Origin: Macrostomum lignano
Taxonomy: Eukaryota
Direction: 5' to 3'
Assembly: GCA_002269645.1 (NCBI GenBank)
Contig: NIVC01004105.1
Location: forward strand, 1-60,582
DNA length: 60,582 nucleotides
Part shown: positions 1 through 60,582 of the stretch, piece by piece
How positions within the stretch are numbered: the first letter of the stretch is position 1
How the letters are laid out: the number at the start of each line of letters is the position of its first letter
Program-made: the position numbers and the translations under genes
The notes under the pieces: model-generated
What the model was told of the DNA's origin: nothing
The model's database searches: none
What the model saw: the letters and a program-made list of their open reading frames with translations, nothing else

Positions 1-3000
1 AAGAAGGGGTCCAAGGAATGCACCAAGTGTCCTGCTGGAAGCGTGTGTACCAACGGCGCCTCCGAGCCGACCAAGTGCAAGCGGGAACGTTTGCGATCGC
101 CGGATCTAGCAAGTGTACACCGAGTCCACCGGGATCATTTCGTCGACAAGACTGGCTCGACAAGCGCTAAACCGTGTCCTGCAGGCACGTGGAGCGTAAA
201 GGCGCGGCCGCGTGTACGAACTGCGAGCCTGGAACAATCTCAACTGTCGCTCTTCGGCATGCACCCAGTGCCCGGCAGGAAGCATTGCTGACCGAGCCGG
301 GTTAAGCGCCTGCACTAAGTGTCCACCGGGTAGCTTCGCCAACAAGAAGGGTCCAAGGAATGCACCAAGTGTCCTGCTGGAAGCGTGTGTACCAACGGCG
401 CCTCCGAGCCGACCAAGTGCAAGGCGGGAACGTTTGCGATCGCCGGATCTAGCAAGTGTACACCGAGTCCACCGGGATCATTCGTCGACAAGACTGGCTC
501 GACAAGCGCTAAACCGTGTCCTGCAGGCACGTGGAGCGGTAAAGGCGCGGCCGCGTGTACGAACTGCGAGCCTGGAACAATCTCAACTGTCGGCTCTTCG
601 GCATGCACCCAGTGCCCGGCAGGAAGCATTGCTGACCGAGCCGGGTTAAGCGCCTGCACTAAGTGTCCACCGGTAGCTTCGCCAACAAGAAGGGGTCCAA
701 GGAATGCACCAAGTGTCCTGCTGGAAGCGTGTGTACAACGGCGCCTCCGAGCCGACCAAGTGCAAGGCGGGAACGTTTGCGATCGCCGGATCTAGCAAGT
801 GTACACCGAGTCCACCGGGATCATTCGTCGACAAGACTGGCTCGACAAGCGCTAAACCGTGTCCTGCAGGCACGTGGAGCGGTAAAGGCGCGGCCGCGTG
901 TACGAACTGCGAGCCTGGAACAATCTCAACTGTCGGCTCTTCGGCATGCACCCAGTGCCCGGCAGGAAGCATTGCTGACCGAGCCGGGTTAAGCGCCTGC
1001 ACTAAGTGTCCACCGGGTAGCTTCGCCAACAAGAAGGGGTCCAAGGAATGCACCAAGTGTCCTGCTGGAAGCGTGTGTACCAACGGCGCCTCCGAGCCGA
1101 CCAAGTGCAAGGCGGGAACGTTTGCGATCGCCGGATCTAGCAAGTGTACACCGAGTCCACCGGGATCATTCGTCGACAAGACTGGCTCGACAAGCGCTAA
1201 ACCGTGTCCTGCAGGCACGTGGAGCGGTAAAGGCGCGGCCGCGTGTACGAACTGCGAGCCTGGAACAATCTCAACTGTCGGCTCTTCGGCATGCACCCAG
1301 TGCCCGGCAGGAAGCATTGCTGACCGAGCCGGGTTAAGCGCCTGCACTAAGTGTCCACCGGGTAGCTTCGCCAACAAGAAGGGGTCCAAGGAATGCACCA
1401 AGTGTCCTGCTGGAAGCGTGTGTACCAACGGCGCCTCCGAGCCGACCAAGTGCAAGGCGGGAACGTTTGCGATCGCCGGATCTAGCAAGTGTACACCGAG
1501 TCCACCGGGATCATTCGTCGACAAGACTGGCTCGACAAGCGCTAAACCGTGTCCTGCAGGCACGTGGAGCGGTAAAGGCGCGGCCGCGTGTACGAACTGC
1601 GAGCCTGGAACAATCTCAACTGTCGGCTCTTCGGCATGCACCCAGTGCCCGGCAGGAAGCATTGCTGACCGAGCCGGGTTAAGCGCCTGCACTAAGTGTC
1701 CACCGGGTAGCTTCGCCAACAAGAAGGGGTCCAAGGAATGCACCAAGTGTCCTGCTGGAAGCGTGTGTACCAACGGCGCCTCCGAGCCGACCAAGTGCAA
1801 GGCGGGAACGTTTGCGATCGCCGGATCTAGCAAGTGTACACCGAGTCCACCGGGATCATTCGTCGACAAGACTGGCTCGACAAGCGCTAAACCGTGTCCT
1901 GCAGGCACGTGGAGCGGTAAAGGCGCGGCCGCGTGTACGAACTGCGAGCCTGGAACAATCTCAACTGTCGGCTCTTCGGCATGCACCCAGTGCCCGGCAG
2001 GAAGCATTGCTGACCGAGCCGGGTTAAGCGCCTGCACTAAGTGTCCACCGGGTAGCTTCGCCAACAAGAAGGGGTCCAAGGAATGCACCAAGTGTCCTGC
2101 TGGAAGCGTGTGTACCAACGGCGCCTCCGAGCCGACCAAGTGCAAGGCGGGAACGTTTGCGATCGCCGGATCTAGCAAGTGTACACCGAGTCCACCGGGA
2201 TCATTCGTCGACAAGACTGGCTCGACAAGCGCTAAACCGTGTCCTGCAGGCACGTGGAGCGGTAAAGGCGCGGCCGCGTGTACGAACTGCGAGCCTGGAA
2301 CAATCTCAACTGTCGGCTCTTCGGCATGCACCCAGTGCCCGGCAGGAAGCATTGCTGACCGAGCCGGGTTAAGCGCCTGCACTAAGTGTCCACCGGGTAG
2401 CTTCGCCAACAAGAAGGGGTCCAAGGAATGCACCAAGTGTCCTGCTGGAAGCGTGTGTACCAACGGCGCCTCCGAGCCGACCAAGTGCAAGGCGGGAACG
2501 TTTGCGATCGCCGGATCTAGCAAGTGTACACCGAGTCCACCGGGATCATTCGTCGACAAGACTGGCTCGACAAGCGCTAAACCGTGTCCTGCAGGCACGT
2601 GGAGCGGTAAAGGCGCGGCCGCGTGTACGAACTGCGAGCCTGGAACAATCTCAACTGTCGGCTCTTCGGCATGCACCCAGTGCCCGGCAGGAAGCATTGC
2701 TGACCGAGCCGGGTTAAGCGCCTGCACTAAGTGTCCACCGGGTAGCTTCGCCAACAAGAAGGGGTCCAAGGAATGCACCAAGTGTCCTGCTGGAAGCGTG
2801 TGTACCAACGGCGCCTCCGAGCCGACCAAGTGCAAGGCGGGAACGTTTGCGATCGCCGGATCTAGCAAGTGTACACCGAGTCCACCGGGATCATTCGTCG
2901 ACAAGACTGGCTCGACAAGCGCTAAACCGTGTCCTGCAGGCACGTGGAGCGGTAAAGGCGCGGCCGCGTGTACGAACTGCGAGCCTGGAACAATCTCAAC

Positions 3001-6000
3001 TGTCGGCTCTTCGGCATGCACCCAGTGCCCGGCAGGAAGCATTGCTGACCGAGCCGGGTTAAGCGCCTGCACTAAGTGTCCACCGGGTAGCTTCGCCAAC
3101 AAGAAGGGGTCCAAGGAATGCACCAAGTGTCCTGCTGGAAGCGTGTGTACCAACGGCGCCTCCGAGCCGACCAAGTGCAAGGCGGGAACGTTTGCGATCG
3201 CCGGATCTAGCAAGTGTACACCGAGTCCACCGGGATCATTCGTCGACAAGACTGGCTCGACAAGCGCTAAACCGTGTCCTGCAGGCACGTGGAGCGGTAA
3301 AGGCGCGGCCGCGTGTACGAACTGCGAGCCTGGAACAATCTCAACTGTCGGCTCTTCGGCATGCACCCAGTGCCCGGCAGGAAGCATTGCTGACCGAGCC
3401 GGGTTAAGCGCCTGCACTAAGTGTCCACCGGGTAGCTTCGCCAACAAGAAGGGGTCCAAGGAATGCACCAAGTGTCCTGCTGGAAGCGTGTGTACCAACG
3501 GCGCCTCCGAGCCGACCAAGTGCAAGGCGGGAACGTTTGCGATCGCCGGATCTAGCAAGTGTACACCGAGTCCACCGGGATCATTCGTCGACAAGACTGG
3601 CTCGACAAGCGCTAAACCGTGTCCTGCAGGCACGTGGAGCGGTAAAGGCGCGGCCGCGTGTACGAACTGCGAGCCTGGAACAATCTCAACTGTCGGCTCT
3701 TCGGCATGCACCCAGTGCCCGGCAGGAAGCATTGCTGACCGAGCCGGGTTAAGCGCCTGCACTAAGTGTCCACCGGGTAGCTTCGCCAACAAGAAGGGGT
3801 CCAAGGAATGCACCAAGTGTCCTGCTGGAAGCGTGTGTACCAACGGCGCCTCCGAGCCGACCAAGTGCAAGGCGGGAACGTTTGCGATCGCCGGATCTAG
3901 CAAGTGTACACCGAGTCCACCGGGATCATTCGTCGACAAGACTGGCTCGACAAGCGCTAAACCGTGTCCTGCAGGCACGTGGAGCGGTAAAGGCGCGGCC
4001 GCGTGTACGAACTGCGAGCCTGGAACAATCTCAACTGTCGGCTCTTCGGCATGCACCCAGTGCCCGGCAGGAAGCATTGCTGACCGAGCCGGGTTAAGCG
4101 CCTGCACTAAGTGTCCACCGGGTAGCTTCGCCAACAAGAAGGGGTCCAAGGAATGCACCAAGTGTCCTGCTGGAAGCGTGTGTACCAACGGCGCCTCCGA
4201 GCCGACCAAGTGCAAGGCGGGAACGTTTGCGATCGCCGGATCTAGCAAGTGTACACCGAGTCCACCGGGATCATTCGTCGACAAGACTGGCTCGACAAGC
4301 GCTAAACCGTGTCCTGCAGGCACGTGGAGCGGTAAAGGCGCGGCCGCGTGTACGAACTGCGAGCCTGGAACAATCTCAACTGTCGGCTCTTCGGCATGCA
4401 CCCAGTGCCCGGCAGGAAGCATTGCTGACCGAGCCGGGTTAAGCGCCTGCACTAAGTGTCCACCGGGTAGCTTCGCCAACAAGAAGGGGTCCAAGGAATG
4501 CACCAAGTGTCCTGCTGGAAGCGTGTGTACCAACGGCGCCTCCGAGCCGACCAAGTGCAAGGCGGGAACGTTTGCGATCGCCGGATCTAGCAAGTGTACA
4601 CCGAGTCCACCGGGATCATTCGTCGACAAGACTGGCTCGACAAGCGCTAAACCGTGTCCTGCAGGCACGTGGAGCGGTAAAGGCGCGGCCGCGTGTACGA
4701 ACTGCGAGCCTGGAACAATCTCAACTGTCGGCTCTTCGGCATGCACCCAGTGCCCGGCAGGAAGCATTGCTGACCGAGCCGGGTTAAGCGCCTGCACTAA
4801 GTGTCCACCGGGTAGCTTCGCCAACAAGAAGGGGTCCAAGGAATGCACCAAGTGTCCTGCTGGAAGCGTGTGTACCAACGGCGCCTCCGAGCCGACCAAG
4901 TGCAAGGCGGGAACGTTTGCGATCGCCGGATCTAGCAAGTGTACACCGAGTCCACCGGGATCATTCGTCGACAAGACTGGCTCGACAAGCGCTAAACCGT
5001 GTCCTGCAGGCACGTGGAGCGGTAAAGGCGCGGCCGCGTGTACGAACTGCGAGCCTGGAACAATCTCAACTGTCGGCTCTTCGGCATGCACCCAGTGCCC
5101 GGCAGGAAGCATTGCTGACCGAGCCGGGTTAAGCGCCTGCACTAAGTGTCCACCGGGTAGCTTCGCCAACAAGAAGGGGTCCAAGGAATGCACCAAGTGT
5201 CCTGCTGGAAGCGTGTGTACCAACGGCGCCTCCGAGCCGACCAAGTGCAAGGCGGGAACGTTTGCGATCGCCGGATCTAGCAAGTGTACACCGAGTCCAC
5301 CGGGATCATTCGTCGACAAGACTGGCTCGACAAGCGCTAAACCGTGTCCTGCAGGCACGTGGAGCGGTAAAGGCGCGGCCGCGTGTACGAACTGCGAGCC
5401 TGGAACAATCTCAACTGTCGGCTCTTCGGCATGCACCCAGTGCCCGGCAGGAAGCATTGCTGACCGAGCCGGGTTAAGCGCCTGCACTAAGTGTCCACCG
5501 GGTAGCTTCGCCAACAAGAAGGGGTCCAAGGAATGCACCAAGTGTCCTGCTGGAAGCGTGTGTACCAACGGCGCCTCCGAGCCGACCAAGTGCAAGGCGG
5601 GAACGTTTGCGATCGCCGGATCTAGCAAGTGTACACCGAGTCCACCGGGATCATTCGTCGACAAGACTGGCTCGACAAGCGCTAAACCGTGTCCTGCAGG
5701 CACGTGGAGCGGTAAAGGCGCGGCCGCGTGTACGAACTGCGAGCCTGGAACAATCTCAACTGTCGGCTCTTCGGCATGCACCCAGTGCCCGGCAGGAAGC
5801 ATTGCTGACCGAGCCGGGTTAAGCGCCTGCACTAAGTGTCCACCGGGTAGCTTCGCCAACAAGAAGGGGTCCAAGGAATGCACCAAGTGTCCTGCTGGAA
5901 GCGTGTGTACCAACGGCGCCTCCGAGCCGACCAAGTGCAAGGCGGGAACGTTTGCGATCGCCGGATCTAGCAAGTGTACACCGAGTCCACCGGGATCATT

Positions 6001-8995
6001 CGTCGACAAGACTGGCTCGACAAGCGCTAAACCGTGTCCTGCAGGCACGTGGAGCGGTAAAGGCGCGGCCGCGTGTACGAACTGCGAGCCTGGAACAATC
6101 TCAACTGTCGGCTCTTCGGCATGCACCCAGTGCCCGGCAGGAAGCATTGCTGACCGAGCCGGGTTAAGCGCCTGCACTAAGTGTCCACCGGGTAGCTTCG
6201 CCAACAAGAAGGGGTCCAAGGAATGCACCAAGTGTCCTGCTGGAAGCGTGTGTACCAACGGCGCCTCCGAGCCGACCAAGTGCAAGGCGGGAACGTTTGC
6301 GATCGCCGGATCTAGCAAGTGTACACCGAGTCCACCGGGATCATTCGTCGACAAGACTGGCTCGACAAGCGCTAAACCGTGTCCTGCAGGCACGTGGAGC
6401 GGTAAAGGCGCGGCCGCGTGTACGAACTGCGAGCCTGGAACAATCTCAACTGTCGGCTCTTCGGCATGCACCCAGTGCCCGGCAGGAAGCATTGCTGACC
6501 GAGCCGGGTTAAGCGCCTGCACTAAGTGTCCACCGGGTAGCTTCGCCAACAAGAAGGGGTCCAAGGAATGCACCAAGTGTCCTGCTGGAAGCGTGTGTAC
6601 CAACGGCGCCTCCGAGCCGACCAAGTGCAAGGCGGGAACGTTTGCGATCGCCGGATCTAGCAAGTGTACACCGAGTCCACCGGGATCATTCGTCGACAAG
6701 ACTGGCTCGACAAGCGCTAAACCGTGTCCTGCAGGCACGTGGAGCGGTAAAGGCGCGGCCGCGTGTACGAACTGCGAGCCTGGAACAATCTCAACTGTCG
6801 GCTCTTCGGCATGCACCCAGTGCCCGGCAGGAAGCATTGCTGACCGAGCCGGGTTAAGCGCCTGCACTAAGTGTCCACCGGGTAGCTTCGCCAACAAGAA
6901 GGGGTCCAAGGAATGCACCAAGTGTCCTGCTGGAAGCGTGTGTACCAACGGCGCCTCCGAGCCGACCAAGTGCAAGGCGGGAACGTTTGCGATCGCCGGA
7001 TCTAGCAAGTGTACACCGAGTCCACCGGGATCATTCGTCGACAAGACTGGCTCGACAAGCGCTAAACCGTGTCCTGCAGGCACGTGGAGCGGTAAAGGCG
7101 CGGCCGCGTGTACGAACTGCGAGCCTGGAACAATCTCAACTGTCGGCTCTTCGGCATGCACCCAGTGCCCGGCAGGAAGCATTGCTGACCGAGCCGGGTT
7201 AAGCGCCTGCACTAAGTGTCCACCGGGTAGCTTCGCCAACAAGAAGGGGTCCAAGGAATGCACCAAGTGTCCTGCTGGAAGCGTGTGTACCAACGGCGCC
7301 TCCGAGCCGACCAAGTGCAAGGCGGGAACGTTTGCGATCGCCGGATCTAGCAAGTGTACACCGAGTCCACCGGGATCATTCGTCGACAAGACTGGCTCGA
7401 CAAGCGCTAAACCGTGTCCTGCAGGCACGTGGAGCGGTAAAGGCGCGGCCGCGTGTACGAACTGCGAGCCTGGAACAATCTCAACTGTCGGCTCTTCGGC
7501 ATGCACCCAGTGCCCGGCAGGAAGCATTGCTGACCGAGCCGGGTTAAGCGCCTGCACTAAGTGTCCACCGGGTAGCTTCGCCAACAAGAAGGGGTCCAAG
7601 GAATGCACCAAGTGTCCTGCTGGAAGCGTGTGTACCAACGGCGCCTCCGAGCCGACCAAGTGCAAGGCGGGAACGTTTGCGATCGCCGGATCTAGCAAGT
7701 GTACACCGAGTCCACCGGGATCATTCGTCGACAAGACTGGCTCGACAAGCGCTAAACCGTGTCCTGCAGGCACGTGGAGCGGTAAAGGCGCGGCCGCGTG
7801 TACGAACTGCGAGCCTGGAACAATCTCAACTGTCGGCTCTTCGGCATGCACCCAGTGCCCGGCAGGAAGCATTGCTGACCGAGCCGGGTTAAGCGCCTGC
7901 ACTAAGTGTCCACCGGGTAGCTTCGCCAACAAGAAGGGGTCCAAGGAATGCACCAAGTGTCCTGCTGGAAGCGTGTGTACCAACGGCGCCTCCGAGCCGA
8001 CCAAGTGCAAGGCGGGAACGTTTGCGATCGCCGGATCTAGCAAGTGTACACCGAGTCCACCGGGATCATTCGTCGACAAGACTGGCTCGACAAGCGCTAA
8101 ACCGTGTCCTGCAGGCACGTGGAGCGGTAAAGGCGCGGCCGCGTGTACGAACTGCGAGCCTGGAACAATCTCAACTGTCGGCTCTTCGGCATGCACCCAG
8201 TGCCCGGCAGGAAGCATTGCTGACCGAGCCGGGTTAAGCGCCTGCACTAAGTGTCCACCGGGTAGCTTCGCCAACAAGAAGGGGTCCAAGGAATGCACCA
8301 AGTGTCCTGCTGGAAGCGTGTGTACCAACGGCGCCTCCGAGCCGACCAAGTGCAAGGCGGGAACGTTTGCGATCGCCGGATCTAGCAAGTGTACACCGAG
8401 TCCACCGGGATCATTCGTCGACAAGACTGGCTCGACAAGCGCTAAACCGTGTCCTGCAGGCACGTGGAGCGGTAAAGGCGCGGCCGCGTGTACGAACTGC
8501 GAGCCTGGAACAATCTCAACTGTCGGCTCTTCGGCATGCACCCAGTGCCCGGCAGGAAGCATTGCTGACCGAGCCGGGTTAAGCGCCTGCACTAAGTGTC
8601 CACCGGGTAGCTTCGCCAACAAGAAGGGGTCCAAGGAATGCACCAAGTGTCCTGCTGGAAGCGTGTGTACCAACGGCGCCTCCGAGCCGACCAAGTGCAA
8701 GGCGGGAACGTTTGCGATCGCCGGATCTAGCAAGTGTACACCGAGTCCACCGGGATCATTCGTCGACAAGACTGGCTCGACAAGCGCTAAACCGTGTCCT
8801 GCAGGCACGTGGAGCGGTAAAGGCGCGGCCGCGTGTACGAACTGCGAGCCTGGAACAATCTCAACTGTCGGCTCTTCGGCATGCACCCAGTGCCGGCAGG
8901 AAGCATTGCTGACCGAGCCGGGTTAAGCGCCTGCACTAAGTGTCCACCGGGTAGCTTCGCCAACAAGAAGGGGTCCAAGGAATGCACCAAGTGTC
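1..8995 (+). repeat. 345-bp coding tandem array, ~26 copies, essentially identical
   Basis: The same shadow ORF recurs every 345 bp (1122, 1467, ... 8712). Internal copies appear identical on reading. Confidence 0.97.
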
Positions 8996-10371
8996 CTGCT
9001 GGATATTTTTCTTCGACTTTGAATTCAATAGAATGCACCCCTAGTCCTGCTGGCTATTTTATAAATGGAGTCGGTTCGACCTCCTATAATCCTTGTCCCG
9101 TAGGCACCTGGAGTGGACTTGGTTCAAGTGCGTGTACTGCCTGCATCCCTGGATCATTTTCCTCGTCTGCTGGATCTTCTTCTTGCAGACGATGTTCTCC
9201 TGGAACTTTTGCTAATTCTAACGGCTCAAGTGAGTGCAAACCTTGTCCGCCTGGCAGATACAGCGGCCATAGCGGTGCCTCTTTGTGCGAGTTATGCAAT
9301 GCAGGCAGCTGGAGCCGTTCGGGTGCTTTGTCCTGCCGCTTGTGCCCCAAGGGTCATTTTTCGCCTGCTGGATCAAGGCACTGCATTCAATGTTCGGGGG
9401 GCACTTTTGCAGATCGGGAGGGCACCTCTAGCTGCACGATGTGCCCCCCTGGCAGCGTGGCTGAGGAGCCTGGCTCTACGCGTTGCAGTCTTTGCCGGGT
9501 AGGGCAATACGCGCCAAGCCCTGGTTCAGACAAATGCTTTGATTGTTTCCCTGGCTACTTCACGAACAAAACTGGTAGTAGCACCTGCACGCCCTGCCCC
9601 CCTGGCACGCGATCCAGTATTCAGCGGGCTACCGAATGCATACAGTGCAACTTGGAGAACAATTTGTCATATCGATCTGGTATGAGCATATGCGACGAGT
9701 GCCCCGAGTTCGCCCCGACACTCACAAAATATAAATGTTATGGTGAGCTGATTTTATAAATTTATTTTCCGTTTTACTTTTTTGTAGTTAGCTTTTTGGG
9801 GACATTGTCAACGACTTGACCTGACAGGAGTTTATTGCTAATCGAGCGTCACAAGTTGTGGCCTGAGGCAGTCCCTGTGCCAGTAGGACGGGATACCAGC
9901 TTTGGAGCTATTTTTAGACATCTGTTCGGGACGGTACTCATAATTTACTTATATTGGAACTTATAAAAACGTGAATAAAAATTATATCCACTTTCCCACC
10001 GACATTTAGATCGAGTTAATACCGAGTGCTCTTCTAAAGACGGCATATCGAAAACGTGCAGGTATTCTATAGACTTGAATGTGTGGTCGTACGGAGTCGC
10101 TTACGCTGATGGTCCCGGGCGTGACTTTCTGTTTTACACGTTTTCGAAGACAGTTGATATAAAAAAGTTTCTTTTAATGGCAAAGTCAAACGCCAGAAGC
10201 AGCGCAGAGAACTTGAATTTCCGATGCCTGCCATCCGGCAAGGAGAAACACTTCCCAACGTTCAGGCGGTACAATAACTTTGAATGCGCGAATGCGCAAG
10301 CAATGGAGGTCACGCCGAAGCCATATCACAAGGTCATCATTATTGAGTTGGCGTTTTTCTATAAAGAGTAG
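1..10371 (+). CDS. Giant Cys-rich repeat protein A (CxxC-P-x-G repeats, GCC2/GCC3 / Ephrin_rec_like type) with C-terminal lectin-like domain; 5' partial
   Basis: ORF 704-8926 is a 115-aa unit with 12 Cys, repeated. It continues via ORF 8833-9759 into diverged Cys repeats. Donor G|GTGAGC at 9742/9743 (phase 1) and acceptor CATTTAG| at 10009/10010 join in frame: KCY-D-RVNTECSSKDGISKTCRYSIDLNVWS...IIIELAFFYKE* (stop 10371). Single-base deletions at ~82, ~198, ~249, ~350, ~672, ~736 and ~8894 break the frame at the array edges. Confidence 0.8.
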
Positions 10372-22400: not shown

Positions 22401-24303
22401 GCTTAGATGGAGTCCAGTTGATTTTCTGCTCATTCTGCTCAGCCAGCATGGCGTCAAGGATGGGCACCAGCCACGACTCGAACGCGCAGTAGTTCTTGTT
22501 CGGCACCAGCAGGTTGCCGATCCGGTTGATGCCGGCCTGACGCAGCTGCGCGCCCGGCCAGCGATGGAAGTCGCCGATGTAGGTTGGGTGCATGCACTTG
22601 ATGAGGTCCTCCTCCACGGCGCCGCCGGTGGTGACGAGCACGTCAACCAGGTTGTGCTCGACCAGGTAGCGAATTGACTCGCGCACGCCGCTGGAGATCA
22701 TGTTGGACGTGAAGGCCAAGAATATGGTGCAGTTCGTGCGGGCCCGGCCGTATGGATTCGGGTTGGACACCTCCAAGTCTCCATTGGCGGTTGCGGCACC
22801 CGCGGCTTCCTCCGGCTTGGCGAACTTGCAGTCGAGCATTCGGTTGATTTCGTCTATGGCCAGCGACAGGTTGGTGCCCTGCGGGGTGAATCAACCGTAT
22901 CTACCTGCCGATCTACAGTATCTACCTGCCGATCTATTTACAGTATCTAACTGCCAATCTACAGTATCTAACTGCCGATCTATCTACAGTATCTAACTGC
23001 CGATCTATCTACAGTATCTAACTGCCACTCTACAGTATCTAACTGCCGATCTATCTACAGTATCTACCTGCCGATCTACAGTATCTACCTGCCGATCTAC
23101 AGTATCTACCTGCTGATCTACAGTATCTACCTGCCGATCTATTTACAGTATCTAACTGCCAAACTACAGTATCTAACTGCCGATCTACAGTATCTACCTG
23201 CCGATCTACAGTATCTACCTGCCGATCTACGGTATCTAACTGCCGATCTATCTACAGTATCTAACTGCCGATCTACAGTATCTACCTGCCGATCTACAGT
23301 ATCTACCTGCTGATCTACAGTATCTACCTGCCGATCTATTTACAGTATCTAACTGCCGATCTATCTACAGTATCTAACTGCCGATCTACAGTATCTACCT
23401 GCCGATCTACGGTATCTAACTGCCGATCTATCTACAGTATCTAACTGCCGATCTACAGTATCTAACTGCCGATCTACAGTATCTACCTGCCGATCTACAG
23501 TATCTACCTGCCGATCTATTTACAGTATCTAACTGCCAATCTACAGTATCTAACTGCCGATCTACAGTATCTAACTGCCGATCTACAGTATCTACCTGCC
23601 GATCTACAGTATCTACCTGCCGATCTATTTACAGTATCTAACTGCCAATCTACAGTATCTAACTGCCGATCTATCTACAGTATCTAACTGCCGATCTACT
23701 GTATCTAACTGCCGATCTACGGTATCTAACTGCCGATCTATCTACAATATGCAACTGAAGATATATACAGCATCTAAATGCTGATCTACTTTATCTTCTA
23801 CAGTATCCAACTGACGATCTATCTAAAGTTTCCTTCTATACTGTTTTATCGAATCTAATTGATCTACAGTTCTTACAGATCTGCAGCATCTAACTACTGA
23901 TCTGCAGCATCTAACTACTGATCTGCAGCATCTAACTACTGAACTGCAGCATCTAACTACTGATCTGGAGCATCTAACTACTGAACTGCAGCATCTAACT
24001 ACTGATCTGCAGCATCTAACTACTGAACTGCAGCATCTAACTATTGATCTGCAGCATCTAACTACTGATCTGCAGCATCTAACTACTGAACTGCAGCACC
24101 TACAGGGTAAATAAGCAGAAAAGGTAAACATGAAGACTTACCTGAAAGCCTGTGGTGGCAAATGATTTCATCAGTGCTTCCAGTGACAGCCCGTCAGGCG
24201 CATTGAAGTCGTGACCCTTGACCGGCGTGTCCACGTCTTCTGGCAGCTGGCCGGACTGCATCAGCACAGCCTGCTGGCTGATCTGCGGCGGCTGCTGAGA
24301 CAT
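19475..24303 (-). CDS. DHPS: Deoxyhypusine synthase, 3 exons, ~373 aa
   Basis: Exons 24303-24142, 22878-22382, 19937-19475 (phases 0, 2) total 1122 nt. Motifs [44 protein letters not shown] and [13 protein letters not shown] (catalytic Lys). Confidence 0.96.
19997..20700. repeat. 24-bp minisatellite (ATAGTCTCACCCATGAGTCACTCA) in DHPS intron 2
   Basis: Direct reading; the unit resembles the SNAP29 intron 2 repeat. Confidence 0.95.
20735..22350. repeat. 24-bp minisatellite (GGACTCAGGACAGGAATGCATAAA), ~67 copies, in DHPS intron 2
   Basis: Direct reading; variable 3-nt position (AAA/AAC/GGA/GAA). Confidence 0.96.
22897..23760. repeat. 21/25-bp minisatellite (GATCTACAGTATCTACCTGCC) in DHPS intron 1
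   Basis: Direct reading; some units carry an extra 4 nt. Confidence 0.93.
23870..24098. repeat. 21-bp minisatellite (GATCTGCAGCATCTAACTACT) in DHPS intron 1
   Basis: About 11 copies; related to the adjacent 21-bp array. Confidence 0.92.
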
Positions 24304-24444
24304 GGCTGAAGTGTCCGGGGAGTGCTTGAGAATGTACTTCTTTATCAAGTATCGCAACTGTCTTCGGTTCCAGTAAAACAATTGCTGGCAAAATACTTTA
24401 AAATATTTTAGCATCATTTTACAGTATTACAGTGAATATAGCAG

Positions 24445-24465
24445 TCGTAGTAGTAGTAGTAGTAT

Positions 24466-24524
<59 letters not shown>

Positions 24525-24585
24525 TCAGTAGTAGTATTAGTAGCAGTAGCAGTAGTAGTAGTTTTAGTAGCAGTAGTAGTAGTAA

Positions 24586-24617
<32 letters not shown>

Positions 24618-24686
24618 GTAGTAGTAGTAGTAGTAGAAGTAGTAGTAGTAGTAGTAGCAGTAGTAGTAGTGATAGTAGTAGTAGTA

Positions 24687-24719
<33 letters not shown>

Positions 24720-24734
24720 ATAGTAGTAGTAGTA

Positions 24735-24784
<50 letters not shown>

Positions 24785-24810
24785 TGTAATAGTAGTAGTA
24801 GTAGTAGTAA

Positions 24811-24876
<66 letters not shown>

Positions 24877-24900
24877 CAGTAGTAGTACTAATTGTAGTAG
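24445..24900. repeat. (AGT)n microsatellite, ~150 units, MFSD9-DHPS spacer
   Basis: Direct reading; produces poly-Leu and poly-Val spurious ORFs. Confidence 0.97.
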
Positions 24901-25356
24901 AGTATTATTTTTACTACACATTGGCATCTAGGCTCAAGAGTCCGTACTGTACCTTGCCAGGAAAGAAGGTGGGCAGCAAAGTAATAAAAAACAAGAAGTA
25001 AAAAACATTTTTAAGTATGTTTGTTTATATTTTTGTCACAACGAAAGATAAACAACGGAACATTGTGATTCTGTAGATTTTGTGCGATTCTGTGCAAAAT
25101 CAGATCAGGAAAGACAGCTGGAAGTGCGGGAAAAGCGCCTGGCACATGGAATAATGCTCATATTGGGAACCACTGAAAATCAGGAACTCAAAGGTGGATC
25201 GCATCCCTTCCTGCCGTTCCTGGTGGTTAATTAAAATTATGCTAACAGAAAATTACGATTAAAAAATCTATACAGACTACTTGCGCTTGCAATGCAGTAG
25301 GCAGGTAGCAAATTTTGTAGCTTAAAATTTCAGATAAAAACTGGGGTGAAGACTCG

Positions 25357-26687
25357 TCAGCGCGACTTCCGATCCGCATCAGGACAGCCAGCGGCCAGCC
25401 GTCCTCGCCGGCTCTGCAGCCAGTTAACCGCGGGAGCCGCGGCGGCCAGCGGGCAGGCCAGGCAGACGGAGATCAGCGCTGCAGCCGGCTGGCTCGGAGC
25501 TTCGTGGCCGGGCAGCGCGGCTTCGACGCAGCCGCCGAGCAGCGGAGCGAGCAGGCGGGCCAGCGAGTTCACCGACTGCGAGGCGGCCATCGCGTCGGTC
25601 AGGGCGGCCTCGGGACAGGCGAAGGACGAGCTGACAAGCCGGCAGCGCAGCAGGGTCGGGTATGCGTCCCTGGCCAGGCCGTTGAAGAAGCTCAGCGGGG
25701 CCTGGGCGGCGGCGAACTGTGCCAGGCTGGTGACGAGACCCGAGGAGGCCAGTGAGAGGCAGGCGGCCTGGCCGGCGGCTGCCAGCAGCACCAGGCGGTC
25801 GGGGCCGAGGCCAGTGGCCGACTGCAGCGGCCCGATGGACAGGCCGGACAGCAGGCCGGAGACGGCGCCCAGCGAGGTGGCGAGGCCCGCGCCGGCGGAC
25901 GAGGCAGAGAAGCGCGAGTTCAGCGCCAGGGCGAAGTTGTGCCGGAACAGCTGAGCGGCCAGCGACATCGGCAGCTGCAGCGCCAGCAGGTCGGCCACGG
26001 CCAGCGCAGCGGACAGCGCCGAGGAGGTCGGAGTCGGCCTAGAACTCCGACCGGATGACTTCGGCGCCACCTCGGCAGCTGGCGCTGCTGCCGACACCGC
26101 GGTCGCGATGCCGACAGTCAAAAAGCCGACGCAGGCGAGGCCGGTCACCAGGCGGAAGCCGCCAAAGTCGAAGGCGACCCCACCGACCATGGGCCCGACG
26201 ATGAAGCCGAGGGAGGACAGCGTCGAGTGCGAGCCGAGCAGACGGATCCGGCGACTTTCGCTGACGTCAGGCGACGAGGCGAGCTGCGTCCGCTGCAGAG
26301 TCTGGGTGTGCTTGAACAGAGCCGTGATGAGGCGGAGGCTGGCTAGGCTGGGGAAGTCGGGCGGCCCGAGGCCCAACGCCAGGTAGCCCGCGGCGGAGGC
26401 CACGCAGCAAAGGCTGTGGGCGTTGCGGGCGCCGAACCGGCGAACCAGGCGGCCCTGGGAGGAGGGAGGGCGCGAATTGGGAAGCCTAACTGAGCTGGGC
26501 TGGGAATGGGAAACTGAGACCAAGACTGACAGACTCAAGAGAAACCATCGGGTAGGGTTGCTCGCTTAACAACAATCAAGCAATGAAGCAATGAAGCAAT
26601 GTTGATCAAGAGAAACCAGCAGACACAGACAGGCAGGCAGGCAGGAAGGCAGACAGACAGACAGACAGGCAGGCAGGCAGGCAGACA

Positions 26688-26724
<37 letters not shown>

Positions 26725-27453
26725 ACAGACACAGACAGGCAGACAGACAGACAGACAGACAGACAGGCAGGCAGGCAGGCAGGCAGGCAGACAGACAGGC
26801 AGACAGACAGGCAGACAGACAGGCAGACAGACAGACAGGCAGACAGGCAGGCAGGCAGGCAGACAGACACAGACAGGCAGACAGGCAGACAGACAGGCAG
26901 ACAGGCAGGCAGACAGACAGACAGGCAGGCAGACAGGCAGACAGACAGACAGGCAGACAGACAGGCAGACAGACAAACAGACAGACAGGCAGACAGACAG
27001 ACAGACAGACAGACAGACAGGCAGACAGACAGGCAGACAGACAGGCAGACAGACAGTACACAGCAAAAAACTCACACAAATCGAGCTGGAAAAAATCTGC
27101 ACAGCTCCGTACTCGGACTCTGAAAAATTAAAGTTTCCCAGTAATGTCTCACTAAGATTGAAGCAACACCAATACTACTGATAGTAGTAAAATATTCGAG
27201 TAGTTTATTGGCTTACGAAACAATCCCATGTAGAACGGAGCCATGTCGATTTGTTTCAGGTGAATGGGCAGGCAGGTGATGACCATGCTGACGCAGAACA
27301 GGTCCTGAGCAAATTACGAGTAAATGAAGGTAAGATAAGGCCGATGAGCCACACTACAGCGTACTTGAGCAGTGAACTCACCGCAAAGCCTGCCAGGCAC
27401 AGTAGAAACTGCCGCCTGTCAGATTGCGCCAGCTCAGCGACAAATAAGCCGGC
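25357..27453 (-). CDS. MFSD9: MFS transporter, MFSD9-like, 4 coding exons, ~434 aa; no ATG in the first coding exon
   Basis: Exons 27453-27382, 27304-27217, 27119-27076, 26454-25357 (phases 0, 1, 0) read AGLFVAELAQSDRRQFLLCLAGFA-DLFCVSMVIT...-QSEYGAVQIFSSSIC-GRLVRRFG...ALFKHTQTL...LGFIVGPMVGG. This matches the MFSD9 pattern as I recall it (RRFLLCL..GFLDLFGVSM, GIFKHTL, GFILGPVVGG). Confidence 0.8.
26622..27056. repeat. (CAGA/CAGG)n microsatellite in MFSD9 intron 3
   Basis: Direct reading. Confidence 0.95.
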
Positions 27454-27506
27454 CTGAAGTTGAGGGGCGGTGGGCGAATGGCGAACGTTACGGGCAATCG
27501 TCAAGG

Positions 27507-28030
27507 GATAAGGGTGATTCTCATGGGACAAGGGGTGATTCTCATGGGATAAGGGGGGGTTGCTCATGGGGTAAGGGGGGGGGGTTGCTCATGGGGTAAG
27601 GGAGGTTGCTCATGGGGTAATTCGTGACTCTCATGGGATAAGGGATAAGGGTGATTCTCATGGTATAAGGGGTGATTCTCATGGGACAAGGGGTGATTCT
27701 CATGGGATAATGGGTGATCCTCATGGTATAAGGGGTGATTCTCATGGTATAAGGGGTGATTCTCATGGGACAAGGGGTGCTCCTCATGGGATAACAGGTG
27801 ATTCTCATGGGATAAGGGGGGTTGCTCATGGGGTAAGGGGGGTTGCTCATGGGGTAATTCGTGACTCTCATGGGATAAGGGATAAGGGGTGATCCTTATG
27901 GGATAAGGGATAACGGGTGCTCCTCATGGGATAACGGGTGATTCTCATGGGATAACGGGTGATCCTGATGGGATAGGGATAGAGGGTGGTTCTCATGGAA
28001 TACTCGTACGGGTTGATTATCATGGGATAC
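27507..28030. repeat. 21-bp minisatellite (CTCATGGGATAAGGGGTGATT) upstream of the MFSD9 first coding exon
   Basis: About 25 variable copies. Confidence 0.92.
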
Positions 28031-28837
28031 TAAATGAGCGATTTTTCACGCCAAAAGTTTCAAGGGATAAAAGACGATTCTCAATGGACAATTGGCGACC
28101 CCATTTTGCTAGGAGTTCGAAAAGTTAAAATAAAGTCCAATTCGATTGAATTAGTTATTAATAACGAAAGATATGATGACAGTTGTTAAATATATATTTA
28201 TCTATAGCTAATTGAAAATTCGTATCGAATAAAGATACGATAGCTAGTTAAACTAAATCACTACTTGACTCGCGCGGTTTCTAAAGCACAAAAAATCAAT
28301 TCCAATCCCGCCTTTCCCATCGCAACTGGCAACTAAAATTAGCGTTGAAAAAGCCAGAGACCGGGTCGATCTGCTGGCTTATAACAAAAAAGGTCAAAGG
28401 GAAGACAAACAGTCAAATTTGAAAACAAAACTCTGTCCAACCGCTGCTAAGCTACCGAATCGCTAAGAAAACACAGCATATCAAAGTGGGAATCGTGGCG
28501 CCATAATGATTGCAGACTAACAGAAATCTATTTTTAGAACAGAAAATCGATTACAGAAGCGACTGCTCAAAGACGAAACAACATGCTCAGAAAGATTGAA
28601 ATGAGAATGCTCAAAAATAGCAAAACGTCTAATAACTAGCTAGAAGTGATGATGGCGGAGTACCGGGATTTCCTGGCTGACGTTAGTGATGCTGGGCAAG
28701 GGATGCGGTGCTGTTGCTCTTCAAGCAAAATATGGGAAAAATTAAGCGCAAAAAGATAAAATATTTGTTATTTTAAGACAATTTGTTAACGACAAAAATT
28801 CATCGCCAGTCATTATTGGGCATATAAGACAGCTCGG

Positions 28838-29509
28838 TGTGGCAGAGATGGGATAACTTAGTGAGGCAGAGATGGGATAACTCAGTGAGGCAGAGATGGG
28901 ATAATTCACTGTGGCAGAGATGGGATAACTCAGTGAGGCAGAGCTGGGATAACTCAGTGAGGCAGAGATGGGATAACTCAGTGAGGCAGAGATGGGATAA
29001 CTCAGTGAGGCAGAGATGGGATAACTCAGTGAGGCAGAGATGGGATAATTCACTGTGGCACAGATGGGATAACTCACTGTGGCAGAGATGGGATAATTCA
29101 CTGTGGCAGAGATAGGATAACTCACTGTGCCACAGATGGGATAACTCACTGTGGCAGAGATGGGATAACTCACTGTGGCAGAGATGGGATAACTCACTGT
29201 GGCACAGATGGGATAACTCACTGTGGCAGAGATGGGATAATTCACTGTGGCAGAGATAGGATAACTCACTGTGGCACAGATGGGATAACTCACTGTGGCA
29301 GAGATGGGATAACTCACTGAGGCAGAGATGGGATAACTCAGTGAGGCAGAGATGGGATAACTCACTGAGGCAGAGATGGGATAACTCACTGAGGCAGAGA
29401 TGGGATAACCCAGTGAGGCAGAGCTGGGATAACTCAGCGAGGCAGAGATGGGATAACTCAGTGAGGCAGAGATGGGATAACTCACTGAGGCAGAGATGGG
29501 ATAACTCAC
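28838..29509 (-). repeat. 24-bp minisatellite (sense GTGAGTTATCCCATCTCTGCCTCA), ~28 copies, beginning at a donor-consensus site
   Basis: Minus strand reads ...TTATTCCTCTAG|GTGAGTTATCCCATCTCTGCCTCA GTGAGT... Confidence 0.93.
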
Positions 29510-47231: not shown

Positions 47232-48583
47232 CTTCGGCTGTCCGGAAAGTCGCGAGAATGTATTTAAAAAACCAGTCAGAACTATCAAAAAACACGACAA
47301 CAGCACTAGTTGGTAATGTAATCTCCCCTTGCATTGATTACAGCTTGGCAATGGTCAACGAGTTGCTGAACCTCTCTTTTTAAACAATCTTCGTCAAGGC
47401 TTCTTGCCCACTGCAACGCAGCTTCTCGAACTTCATTGTGGTCGCTGAATACTCACCTGGAGAAATCATTCTTCATCCAACTGAACAAAAAACGGTCGCA
47501 CAGATTGAAGTCTGGGCTGTAGGGACTCTGAAACACCAGCTGAACTCCACGGGACTCCATGTACTGCTGCACAGAATGGGCTACGTGAGGTCGCGCATTG
47601 TCCCACTGCCAAAGAACATCCGACAGGTGAATTGGCTTTGACCTCAGAGTACGCCATCGGTCTCCCATGTGCCGAATGAATTCAACTATGCCATCTGCAT
47701 CAACAGTTTGCTTCGGGGCTGTGGATTTAATGGAGAAGCACTTGCTTGGAGTGAAAGCAACCAGAAGCATTGTCTTTGCATTCCCAACCGAGTGCCTGAC
47801 AACCTGGGGCCAATGATCTCCTTGGCCAAGCCAGCACCTGTTGTTTTGCTTTGTGCCAGTGTTGTTCAGGTACACCCACGTCTCATCTTCCACCACGTAC
47901 TTGTCGCAAAAGTTTTCCACCCCCTCGTTGTAAAAAAGCCTGCGGATTTGCTTGGCACAATTGATGCGAGCAGTCTTGTTCTCCTCGGATAGAGCATGAG
48001 GAACCCAGATGGCAGAAACGTTTCGAAGGTGCAAATCCTCGGTCAAAATTTTGTGCACTGTTGTTTTACCAACTTCCAAAAAGTCGGCGAGGTCTCGGAC
48101 ACTAACTTTTGAATCCTCTTCAACGAGAGCTCGGCAGGTTTCGATCAGTTCCGTTGTCCTTGTTGACTGTGGCCGGCCAGTCCGAGGAGCTGAGGCCAGG
48201 GGAAATGCTTCATCACGGAACTTTGAGTACCATCTGTAAACCGTTGACTGACCTGGTGCGGCATCTCCATAAACTTTAAGTAGTTCGTCATAACAACTAA
48301 TAGCAGAGATTCCAAGACAGTATCTAGCGTAGGCATAAGCCTGGAAATCTTCCATTTTGACGAACTCGCTATTAAATTTTTCAAGCTTGATCACTGCATT
48401 GCATTGGTTATTGAGCACTTTATGCTGAGCTCGCCCCTGCCCCCAATTTTGCTGCTAGAATAACAAAAATTTTCACCATAGACATATATAAGTCTATTAT
48501 TGAAATTTTATGTGTGCCATGTCATCAGCTTGCTGCTTTCTTGCTTGACTGACACATTCTCACGACTTTCCGGACAGGCGAAG
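47232..48583 (-). mobile_element. Mariner (DD34D) transposon, full length, 1352 bp
   Basis: 30-bp TIRs CTTCGGCTGTCCGGAAAGTCGCGAGAATGT / ACATTCTCACGACTTTCCGGACAGGCGAAG (2 mismatches). TA TSD at 47230-47231 and 48584-48585. Confidence 0.95.
47306..48355 (-). pseudogene. Mariner transposase, 350 codons, one in-frame TGA
   Basis: ATG at 48355, N-terminal HTH, DETW, DNARPH-34aa-D (YSPDFNLCD). After TGA at 47455-47453 the frame continues VFSDHNEV...HCQAVINARGDYITN* to 47306. Confidence 0.9.
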
Positions 48584-57082: not shown

Positions 57083-60000
57083 TCAGTTGGTATAGAAGGC
57101 GATCTCGCTAATAGAGATGAATTGGCGCTTCTTCCAGAAACTCAGCTCGGCTTTTTTTACCCCATTGGCGACGCAGAAGTCAATCAGCAGGTAGTTGTTT
57201 TTGGTGGCCTTCTTGCCCCTTTTGGAGTCGATGGCGCATTCAAAAGCATTGGGATGGAAGGTGAGTTTTATGTCATACAGCTTATCAATTGGCGATCCGA
57301 CTTTGTTCCAAATCACTACTCTGCGCACGTTGACTGGCACTCGGAAGGCGTATTGGAGAAAGGTGCGCGGATTATACAACCGGTGCTTGACTTGGAACTC
57401 CAAATTGCCCGAGTCGCCGCTCGTTTTCAGGTCGTTATCGATTGTTTGGCGGCACATCTTCACTGCCGTTTCTCCAAAACGCCTCAAAGGATTTTCGCAG
57501 GTTACGTCTGCAACCCTTTCTGAAAAGGATCGGATGGAGTTATTTAACTTGACGCGTTCGACTAGTGAAACACAGCTGCCATGACTTACTCAGGCACTTG
57601 CTGCCCTTGAGAGCGACTTCGGAATCGGGGCACACATCGCGGGTGCACTTCTCTGCACCAGGTTCACTCGAGCTACCAGCAGGACATGCGGTACATTTCG
57701 ATGCTCCAGTTGACGCGAATGTCCCGGCCTTGCAGCTGGTACACTTCTTCGCACCTGGTCCACTTGAGCTACCAGCAGGACATGCGGTACATTTGGATGC
57801 TCCAGTTGACGACGCGAATGTTCCGGCCTTGCAGCTGGTGCACTTCTTCGCACCTGGTCCGCTCGAGCTACCAGCAGGACATGCGATACACTTTGATGCT
57901 CCAGTTGACGCGAATGTCCCGGCCATGCAGCTGGTGCACTTCTTCGCACCTGGTCCGCTCGAGCTACCAGCAGGACATTCGGTACATTTCGATGCTCCAG
58001 TTGACGACGCAAATGTTCCGGACTTGCAGCTGGTACACTTCTTCGCACCTGGTCCGCTCGAGCTACCAGCAGGACATTCGGTACATTTCGATGCTCCAGT
58101 TGACGACGCAAATGTTCCGGACTTGCAGCTGGTACACTTCTTCGCACCTTCGCCACTCGAGCTACCAGCAGGACATTCGGTACATTTCGATGCTCCAGTT
58201 GACGACGCGAATGTCCCGGCCATGCAGCTGGTGCACTTCTTCGCACCTGGTCCGCTCGAGCTACCAGCAGGACATTCGGTGCATTTCGATGCTCCAGTTG
58301 ACGACGCGAATGTTCCGGCCATGCAGCTGGTGCACTTCTTCGCACCTGATCCGCTCGAGCTACCAGCAGGACATTCGGTACATTTCGATGCTCCAGTTGA
58401 CGACGCAAATGTTCCGGCCTTGCAGCTGGTGCACTTCTTCGCACCTGGTCCGCTCGAGCTACCAGCAGGACATTCGGTACATTTCGATGCTCCAGTTGAC
58501 GACGCGAATGTTCCGGACTTGCAGCTGGTGCACTTCTTCGCACCTGATCCGCTCGAGCTACCAGCAGGACATTCGGTGCATTTCGATGCTCCAGTTGACG
58601 ACGCGAATGTTCCGGCCTTGCAGCTGGTGCACTTCTTCGCACCTGATCCGCTCGAGCTACCAGCAGGACATTCGGTACATTTCGATGCTCCAGTTGACGA
58701 CGCAAATGTTCCGGCCTTGCAGCTGGTGCACTTCTTCGCACCTGGTCCACTTGAGCTACCAGCAGGACATTCGGTACATTTCGATGCTCCAGTTGACGAC
58801 GCGAATGTTCCGGACTTGCAGCTGGTGCACTTCTTCGCACCTGGTCCGCTCGAGCTACCAGCAGGACATTCGGTACATTTCGATGCTCCAGTTGACGACG
58901 CAAATGTTCCGGACTTGCAGCTGGTGCACTTCTTCGCACCTGATCCGCTCGAGCTACCAGCAGGACATTCGTACATTTCGATGCTCCAGTTGACGACGCA
59001 AATGTTCCGGCCTTGCAGCTGGTGCACTTCTTCGCACCTGGTCCACTTGAGCTACCAGCAGGACATTCGGTACATTTCGATGCTCCAGTTGACGACGCGA
59101 ATGTTCCGGACTTGCAGCTGGTGCACTTCTTCGCACCTGGTCCGCTCGAGCTACCAGCAGGACATTCGGTACATTTCGATGCTCCAGTTGACGACGCAAA
59201 TGTTCCGGACTTGCAGCTGGTGCACTTCTTCGCACCTGATCCGCTCGAGCTACCAGCAGGACATTCGGTACATTTCGATGCTCCAGTTGACGACGCAAAT
59301 GTTCCGGCCTTGCAGCTGGTGCACTTCTTCGCACCTGGTCCACTTGAGCTACCAGCAGGACATTCGGTGCATTTCGATGCTCCAGTTGACGACGCGAATG
59401 TTCCGGACTTGCAGCTGGTGCACTTCTTCGCACCTGATCGCTCGAGCTACCAGCAGGACATTCGGTACATTTCGATGCTCCAGTTGACGACGCAAATGTT
59501 CCGGACTTGCAGCTGGTGCACTTCTTCGCACCTGATCCGCTCGAGCTACCAGCAGGACATTCGGTACATTTCGATGCTCCAGTTGACGACGCAAATGTTC
59601 CGGCTTTGCAGCTGGTACACTTCTCTGCACCAGGTTCACTCGAGCTACCAGCAGGACATTCGGTACATTTCGATGCTCCAGTTGACGACGCGAATGTTCC
59701 GGCCTTGCAGCTGGTGCACTTCTTCGCACCTGGTCCGCTCGAGCTACCAGCAGGACATTCGGTACATTTCGATGCTCCAGTTGACGACGCAAATGTTCCG
59801 GCCATGCAGCTGGTGCACTTCTCCGCACCTGGTCCACTCGAGCTTCCAGCAGGACATTTTTTGCAGTTGGCTTGACCGGCCTGAGAGGCGAAGCTACCAG
59901 AGGAGCACGGAGCACAGGTCGCGGCGCCAGCGGTCGCAGAGAATCCGGCCTTGCAGCTGGTGCACTTTACCGCACCTTCGACACTCGAGCTGCCAGCGGA

Positions 60001-60582
60001 ACACTTGCTGCAACCTGTTGCTCCGGCTTCACTGGCAAAGTATCCAGCTGAACACGGGGTGCAGCGTCGATGATCCGGTTGCTGAGGCGAATGTCCCGGG
60101 CTTGCAGCTGGTACAACGCGCTGCACCTGGTCCACTCGAGCTGCCTGTCGGACACGGAGTGCAGCCAGTGGATCCTTCCGGCGAGAATGCGCTGAAAGTT
60201 CCTGCCATACAGACGCGGCATTTTCTGTTACCTTCAAAGCTTTTTGCGTTGCCAGCGCTGCATGGAACGCACAGTGTTTTATCTTTGTCGCTAGGCTGGT
60301 AGCCTTTCGGACACTCGGAGAAGCACTGCGCACTTTTGCAGGTGGAAGTGGTGCACGCGATTCGCACTTTGTCGCACTTATCCGCCGTTCCTTTCAGCTG
60401 GTTGTTCTTCGGCGCTCCGTTGTCGAACCATTGTGCACTTGAAAATTCACGAACGTTGCCGACTTTCTGTCCTTGTGGTGGCGTCGAAATTGAAGTAGGA
60501 GAATTCGGAACTCCTGCCGTTGGCCGATACTTGTGGGCTGACTTCCCAGTCTTTTTGCCGTTGGCTAGCAGGTTCTGGTTCT
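57083..60582 (-). CDS. Giant Cys-rich repeat protein B with C-terminal F5/8C / galactose-binding-like domain; 5' partial
   Basis: The frame is open from the window end. Cys repeats continue through ORFs 60029-60367, 58954-60333, 57540-59027 with 1-nt deletions at ~60065, ~59437, ~58970. Donor A|GTAAGT at 57590/57589 (phase 1) and acceptor TTTTCAG| at 57520/57519 give the last exon KRVADVTC...CRQTIDND...VRRVVIWNK...ISISEIAFYTN*. Confidence 0.8.
57645..59850 (-). repeat. 99-bp coding tandem array, ~22 variable copies (CTECPAGSSSGPGAKKCTSCKAGTFASSTGASK)
   Basis: 33-aa periodicity, with K/M, A/S and P/S substitutions and two units lacking a Ser codon. Confidence 0.95.

Follow-up and report, generated by a model that had tools for sequence, protein, structure and literature searches.

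The initiator codon of an MFSD9-like gene in the flatworm Macrostomum lignano is probably not supplied by the gene itself. The best explanation of how its protein begins is that a spliced leader (SL) ending in AUG is added at an acceptor directly preceding a reading frame without a start codon of its own, so that translation would open with M-AGLFVAELAQSDRR and proceed into the first transmembrane helix (TM1). This had been proposed in a preliminary description of the locus and is still the best-supported reading, its support coming from the acceptor motif, the conservation of the first coding exon (exon A) and the 5'-partial state of the gene models. From the sequence and its frame, homology, the SL, the motif and the boundaries of the annotated models we infer both the addition of the SL at position 27453 and the initiation of ribosomes at its AUG.

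The gene lies on the minus strand of contig NIVC01004105.1 (assembly GCA_002269645.1, Mlig_3_7) under the GenBank name BOX15_Mlig033358g2. All positions refer to the window, by which is meant the whole 60,582-nt stretch of DNA that was analysed and which is the complete contig. The GenBank protein PAA48602.1 (Mlig033358g2, 430 aa, partial) maps to positions 27444-25357 of the minus strand, and a protein search with our spliced translation as the query returned a 99%-identical GenBank protein. When the segments 27453-27382, 27304-27217, 27119-27076 and 26454-25357 are joined they give an open frame of 433 codons that ends in TGA, and its translation is that of PAA48602.1 save for the first three residues. 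The features of the gene and its acceptor are as follows.

27454-27476, minus strand: pyrimidine-rich tract and CTTCAG acceptor; SL trans-splicing is proposed to occur here, at the junction of 27454 and 27453, and the acceptor matches [T/C]TNCAG.
27382-27453, minus strand: exon A, 24 codons (AGLFVAELAQSDRRQFLLCLAGFA) without an ATG, encoding the predicted cytoplasmic N-terminal tail and the first half of TM1.
27217-27304, minus strand: exon B, in which codon 31 is the first in-frame ATG of the genomic sequence and belongs to the conserved VSM of TM1.
27076-27119, minus strand: exon C (…QSEYGAVQIFSSSIC), in the joined frame and confirmed by PAA48602.1.
25357-26454, minus strand: exon D, which ends with the TGA stop (25359-25357); the coding sequence of the mapped GenBank protein ends at 25357.

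On the minus strand the tract reads CCGCCCCTCAACTTCAG and is followed at 27453 by GCC GGC TTA TTT GTC GCT GAG, just as the preliminary description had stated in placing a phase-0 start of GCC GGC TTA behind the acceptor. The tract and acceptor have the same sequence in all three copies of the gene (g2, which is that of the window, g8 and g11), and the 3' end of exon A at 27382 adjoins a GTGAGT donor. Codons 1-30 of the acceptor-spliced frame contain no ATG, the first being codon 31 at 27286-27284. Close to the N-terminus the most hydrophobic stretch of 19 residues is FLLCLAGFADLFCVSMVIT, with the first genomic Met at its position 16, which agrees with the earlier placement of this residue inside TM1. 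The accompanying claim that the exon has no ATG needs to be qualified: it holds if the acceptor is used, but if the acceptor is read through there is an in-frame ATG at 27567-27565.

The gene is, by its predicted product, an MFSD9-like transporter of the major facilitator type, with the MFS fold over its full length and MFSD9 as its closest similarity, an assignment made from the Pfam match, the top named hits and the aligned motifs in a one-way search. The match to Pfam MFS_1 spans residues 18-372 and begins at profile position 1 (E = 3.5e-15), and the best named relatives found with HMMER are MFSD9 of Hippopotamus and the MFSD9-like proteins of Branchiostoma and Ptychodera (E 2e-32 to 7e-29), which match over nearly the full length at 30-36% identity. 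The protein shares with animal MFSD9 the TM1 motif GF-D-F-V-M and the G-x-x-x-D/R-x-G-R-R loop region. However, it is Ala/Leu-rich and diverged, with RLVRRFGARN where others have WSDxxGRR, and the orthologues have an ATG of their own whereas the M. lignano gene does not. Between copies g2 and g11 there are 12 synonymous and six non-synonymous differences, a pattern that fits a gene under purifying selection.

Alignment with the orthologues also indicates where translation should begin. Two residues, F24 and D26, do not vary among the orthologues, and V30 hardly varies (numbering counts the SL-derived Met as residue 1). The codons of all three lie in exon A or in the first part of exon B, ahead of the first genomic Met, and that Met aligns with the conserved one of the GVSM motif within TM1. 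Since exon A carries invariant residues of TM1 and Met31 lies deep within that helix, the initiator must be at or upstream of the acceptor. A single added Met gives 15 residues ahead of TM1 (MAGLFVAELAQSDRR), as many as the Branchiostoma MFSD9-like protein has; in the orthologues this tail measures 11 to 45 residues.

These observations bear directly on the possibility that translation starts within the genomic sequence, whether at Met31, with truncation of the protein, or at a near-cognate triplet, of which the CTG at codon 8 is an example. Two UniProt models do begin at Met31, and the CTG has G at both -3 and +4. However, the Met31 models are a fallback of the gene finder and not experimental evidence, and Met31 itself falls in the conserved VSM, past the invariant F and D, so that its product would be without most of TM1. 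In addition, if the SL is added, its AUG is in frame ahead of both Met31 and the CTG. An internal start is for these reasons considered improbable.

The SL of M. lignano is 35 nt long (CGGTCTCTTACTGCGAAGACTCAATTTATTGCATG) and has ATG at its 3' end (PMC8629364), which is the only ATG that it contains; the premise of a flatworm with an SL ending in AUG, made in the preliminary description from the letters of the DNA, is therefore correct for the organism from which that DNA came. The top motif published for M. lignano SL acceptors is [T/C]TNCAG, located exactly at the junction, and the CTTCAG of MFSD9 fits it. When the SL is spliced in silico to 27453 the product reads ATG|GCC GGC TTA, in frame and open through all 433 codons with no stop between. 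No other AUG in the resulting mRNA would be able to give the complete protein, as there is none in codons 1-30 and Met31 is inside TM1.

According to this model, the MFSD9 pre-mRNA would carry an outron that includes an AUG-rich 21-nt minisatellite. The spliceosome would join the 35-nt SL to the CTTCAG acceptor and place the SL AUG directly before the GCC at 27453, an event that removes the outron and adds a 5' untranslated region of 32 nt together with the AUG. The junction of SL and exon A in the mRNA would be ...TTATTGCATG|GCCGGCTTATTTGTCGC, and the SL AUG, as the first AUG of the mature message, would start the M-AGLFVAELAQSDRR tail that leads into TM1. The N-terminus of the full-length transporter would then read (M)AGLFVAELAQSDR. 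Ala in the second position favours Met excision, after which the peptide may be N-acetylated. If trans-splicing did not take place, no correctly started MFSD9 protein would be expected. In the protein and contig collections searched, the only matches were genome-derived models, none of them beginning MAGLF. An Rfam scan and a search with the SL 35-mer found no match in the window; the SL RNA gene is located elsewhere. A count of YTNCAG over the whole window was also tried and set aside as uninformative, the motif being too short and its number inflated by repeats.

The use of the terminal AUG of a flatworm SL as an initiator was set out for Schistosoma mansoni by Cheng et al. in 2006, as recounted in PMC9851317 and PMC12582326. 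In that species 28% of trans-spliced transcripts have the SL AUG in frame, and it is required by more than 40 cDNAs (PMC9851317). A terminal ATG is described as a key feature that every reported flatworm SL has (PMC12582326). On the accounts given of them, the S. mansoni SL-AUG mRNAs (Cheng, Cohen, Ndegwa & Davis, J Biol Chem 2006; later termed 'slORFs') share with MFSD9 an SL that ends in AUG, an acceptor that abuts a startless open frame and, on the model proposed for MFSD9, an SL AUG that is in frame and the first of the mature mRNA. They differ from the present case, which concerns an MFSD9-like gene in a free-living macrostomorph and is known here from sequence and annotation. For Macrostomum, Wiberg et al. 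(G3 2023, PMC10468722) noted that the final ATG of the SL is a translation start codon and left it untrimmed on their reads as a precaution against problems of annotation. The problem they had in mind is the one that would make MFSD9 'partial' in GenBank, although theirs was a general remark on the annotation of M. cliftonense and M. hystrix and not on MFSD9 or its M. lignano copies. What is proposed for the MFSD9 locus is a fresh instance of a mechanism known since 2006 and already noted for this genus.

The annotation of the three copies is in keeping with an SL-derived start. GenBank models of M. lignano were assembled from RNA-seq (SRP082513, SRR2682326) with StringTie/TACO, then cut by TBONE at peaks of SL reads where such evidence exists, and then passed to TransDecoder (PMC5730564). 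The models of all three copies are 5'-partial, have no upstream exon and begin inside exon A, by 9 nt in g2 and g8 and by 12 nt in g11, and their 5' ends are compatible both with a TBONE cut at an SL peak and with a plain StringTie end. The annotated starts are thus 9-12 nt downstream of the acceptor and not at it, an offset that could plausibly result from sparse reads at the 5' end. Three UniProt models based on the older ML2 assembly (A0A1I8I1F4, A0A1I8FQD5 and A0A1I8FEC2) begin with QLQ (QLQAGLF...), which takes them 9 nt upstream of the acceptor (27454-27462), so that some of the evidence behind them may read through it. A genomic start codon for MFSD9 is given in no annotation, older ML2 models either having no Met or falling back on Met31.

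A wider comparison was made with five same-strand genes, namely those for an Alba-like protein, a glycogen-branching-enzyme-like protein (GBE), MFSD9, deoxyhypusine synthase (DHPS) and a SNAP29-like protein. At the three loci all 14 of their annotated starts follow a CAG acceptor by 0-12 nt, against a chance, by rough estimate, of about 2% that YTNCAG occurs in the 12 nt preceding a random position, which argues that these 5' ends are defined by acceptors. The name 'Mlig033358' did not occur in the literature searched, including the supplements of M. lignano papers. A Met derived from the SL would complete the protein and would explain the 5'-partial status of MFSD9 and of many other M. lignano genes in GenBank, as well as the UniProt models that have no Met or start inside TM1. 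MFSD9 would accordingly be a clean candidate for tests of SL-AUG initiation in a free-living flatworm that is open to transgenesis.

Two further sources of a start codon are to be sought upstream of the acceptor, where three features need to be considered.

27501-27975, minus strand: 21-nt minisatellite (CCCATGAGAATCACCCCTTAT-like), presumed to be outron, holding the only in-frame ATG that is open to exon A (27567-27565).
28456-28479, minus strand: candidate 24-nt mini-exon with an ATG (MLCFLSDS), ATGCTGTGTTTTCTTAGCGATTCG|GTAGCT, with a weak donor (GTAGCT) and in no annotated model.
28841-29509, minus strand: 24-nt tandem repeat (GTGAGTTATCCCATCTCTGCCTCA) of about 28 copies, each with GTGAGT; its first unit is the 'donor' at 29509.

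A small cis-spliced exon joined to 27453, of which 28479-28456 is an example, could supply the ATG, and this had been offered in the preliminary description as an alternative to its own proposal. Its sequence, ATG, frame and GT are all present as it had said, and the 24-mer is the same in all three copies of the gene. However, the non-repeat sequence that flanks it is just as conserved (99.5% over a stretch of 401 nt, and 92-94% across the intergenic region), so the identity of the 24-mer is uninformative with regard to selection. Its donor, GTAGC, deviates from the published M. lignano consensus GT[G/A]AG, a short uORF begins at a further ATG, 22 nt upstream, and the RNA-seq-based models of both annotation generations have no upstream exon. 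We regard such an exon as quite improbable. The preliminary description had also argued that the best upstream donor, at 29509, is preceded by an in-frame TAG. Both the TAG and the GTGAGT are there, but the argument is an empty one, since GTGAGT occurs in every unit of the 24-nt repeat and 29509 is not a specific splice site.

The other source is the minisatellite. Read straight through the acceptor, the frame is open for 45 codons and includes the ATG at 27567-27565, 38 codons upstream; this ATG is present in g2 and g11, while the same frame in g8 (L003) has 85 open codons and no Met. One register of the minisatellite is free of both stops and ATGs, and a change in the length of a C-run shifts the register, so the frame around 27567 is open because the repeat has a stop-free frame. 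That g8 has lost the in-frame ATG is the only informative upstream difference among the copies, their unique sequence being otherwise too similar. Absent as it is from one of three otherwise intact copies, and situated in a variable repeat, the ATG at 27567 is unlikely to be a real start. The proposal that the acceptor is unused and a read-through transcript starts at this ATG, with 38 extra residues (MSNPPLSHENHPLSHENHPYPLTIARNVRHSPTAPQLQ) before AGLF, has in its favour the open frame in the window copy and g11 and the 9 nt taken in upstream by the three ML2 models, but is very improbable, as the extension has no counterpart in the orthologues, upstream coverage would have led TransDecoder to call a complete ORF where GenBank has three partial models with starts inside exon A, and scanning ribosomes would be trapped by the 19 ATGs that lie in the 537 nt between 27454 and 27990 and by the 14, of 23 in the 1 kb before the acceptor, that share one out-of-frame register.

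An outron so rich in AUGs would also make RNA that has not been trans-spliced a poor template for the MFSD9 frame. If initiation at the SL AUG is accepted, this leads to a more tentative suggestion, which we would put forward as possible but less likely to be right than wrong: that MFSD9 is wholly dependent on trans-splicing in all three homeologous or allelic copies, that the AUG-laden outron acts as a fail-safe against translation, and that SL addition would serve as an on/off switch and not only to tidy the 5' end.

Among the six genes examined in the window MFSD9 alone is without an ATG of its own. The acceptors of the ZDHHC17-like and SNAP29-like genes lie, as previously described, 18 nt before an ATG whose first base is 43601 and 15 nt before one whose first base is 17814, respectively, and both are in frame and open. 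The gene that follows MFSD9 on the same strand has its acceptor still closer to its start.

24301-24311, minus strand: CTTCAG acceptor of DHPS, 2 nt before its own ATG (24303-24301).

For M. lignano operons resolved by SL evidence the published criterion is a repeat-adjusted spacing of less than 1 kb (Ustyantsev & Berezikov 2021, PMC8629364). The present locus resembles them in having five same-strand genes at CAG acceptors and in the interval between the MFSD9 stop and the first exon base of DHPS, which is 1051 nt, or 585 nt once a TAG/TAC simple repeat (24439-24904) is subtracted, and so falls below 1 kb. It differs on the other side of MFSD9, where 3424 nt separate the GBE stop (30878) from the MFSD9 acceptor (27453) and about 1980 nt are still left after removal of 1445 nt of tandem repeats. 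With tandem repeats alone subtracted, this spacing is above the limit for MFSD9 as a downstream gene in an operon with GBE, so that MFSD9 possibly heads a transcription unit of its own. The UniProt model A0A1I8F5Y1 (P0010) was considered as proof of an MFSD9-DHPS polycistron and rejected, as it is a chimeric ML2 model with an antisense copy of exon D. It runs from antisense MFSD9 exon D through exon A and exon D to the DHPS exons, with a GGAA|GT near the MFSD9 stop joined to the CTTCAG of DHPS, and this splice join is a hint of co-transcription of the two genes (25357-24303).

Two observations were made at the other same-strand genes. At the GBE acceptor (33518 in the window, which is position 3927 of L001; about 3195 in L002; 4143 in L003) the copies differ by 1 nt in a C-run, such that the SL AUG would be in frame with the gene's own ATG in L003 and out of frame in L001; the L002 model starts at another CAG, 6 nt upstream. 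An SL added at the CTCAG acceptor of the Alba-like gene (37241 in the window; L001 204) would put its AUG at the head of an out-of-frame ORF that is longer than 60 codons and overlaps with the annotated frame, and the gene's own ATG is 31 nt downstream of that acceptor.

A scan of metagenomic data for the SL recovered six contigs, none of them from MFSD9, of which five are unrelated SL-capped transcripts and one holds an SL RNA gene. The latter, in the JGI metagenome contig Ga0302322_100095745 (L008, 625-720), is of the Macrostomum type and matches the M. lignano SL, with TTGCATG|GTAAG and the Sm-like site ATTTTTAG, and it matched no Rfam family. The five transcripts (Ga0316592 metatranscriptome contigs L004-L007 and L009) begin with the M. 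lignano SL, and in none of them is the SL AUG the initiator: it opens an ORF of 2-41 codons, with a stop within five codons in four of the five, and the main ORF starts at its own AUG 15-105 nt downstream. As all five use a start of their own, dependence on the SL AUG is a minority state.

The remainder of the window contains other features. Positions 1-9003 consist of 26 copies of a 345-nt tandem repeat at 99% identity, open on both strands with ORFs of about 2,740 codons. Its continuation on the plus strand (8833-9759) encodes Cys-rich repeats of the Ephrin_rec_like/NCD3G type, and similar Cys-rich ORFs are found at 57540-60333 on the minus strand. The 345-nt repeat region is probably the gene of a giant repetitive extracellular protein, or else an array collapsed in the assembly. 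An ORF on the minus strand at 47453-48418, in an AT-rich stretch, has HTH_32, HTH_48 and DDE_3 domains and by these looks like the remnant of a Tc1/mariner-type transposase.
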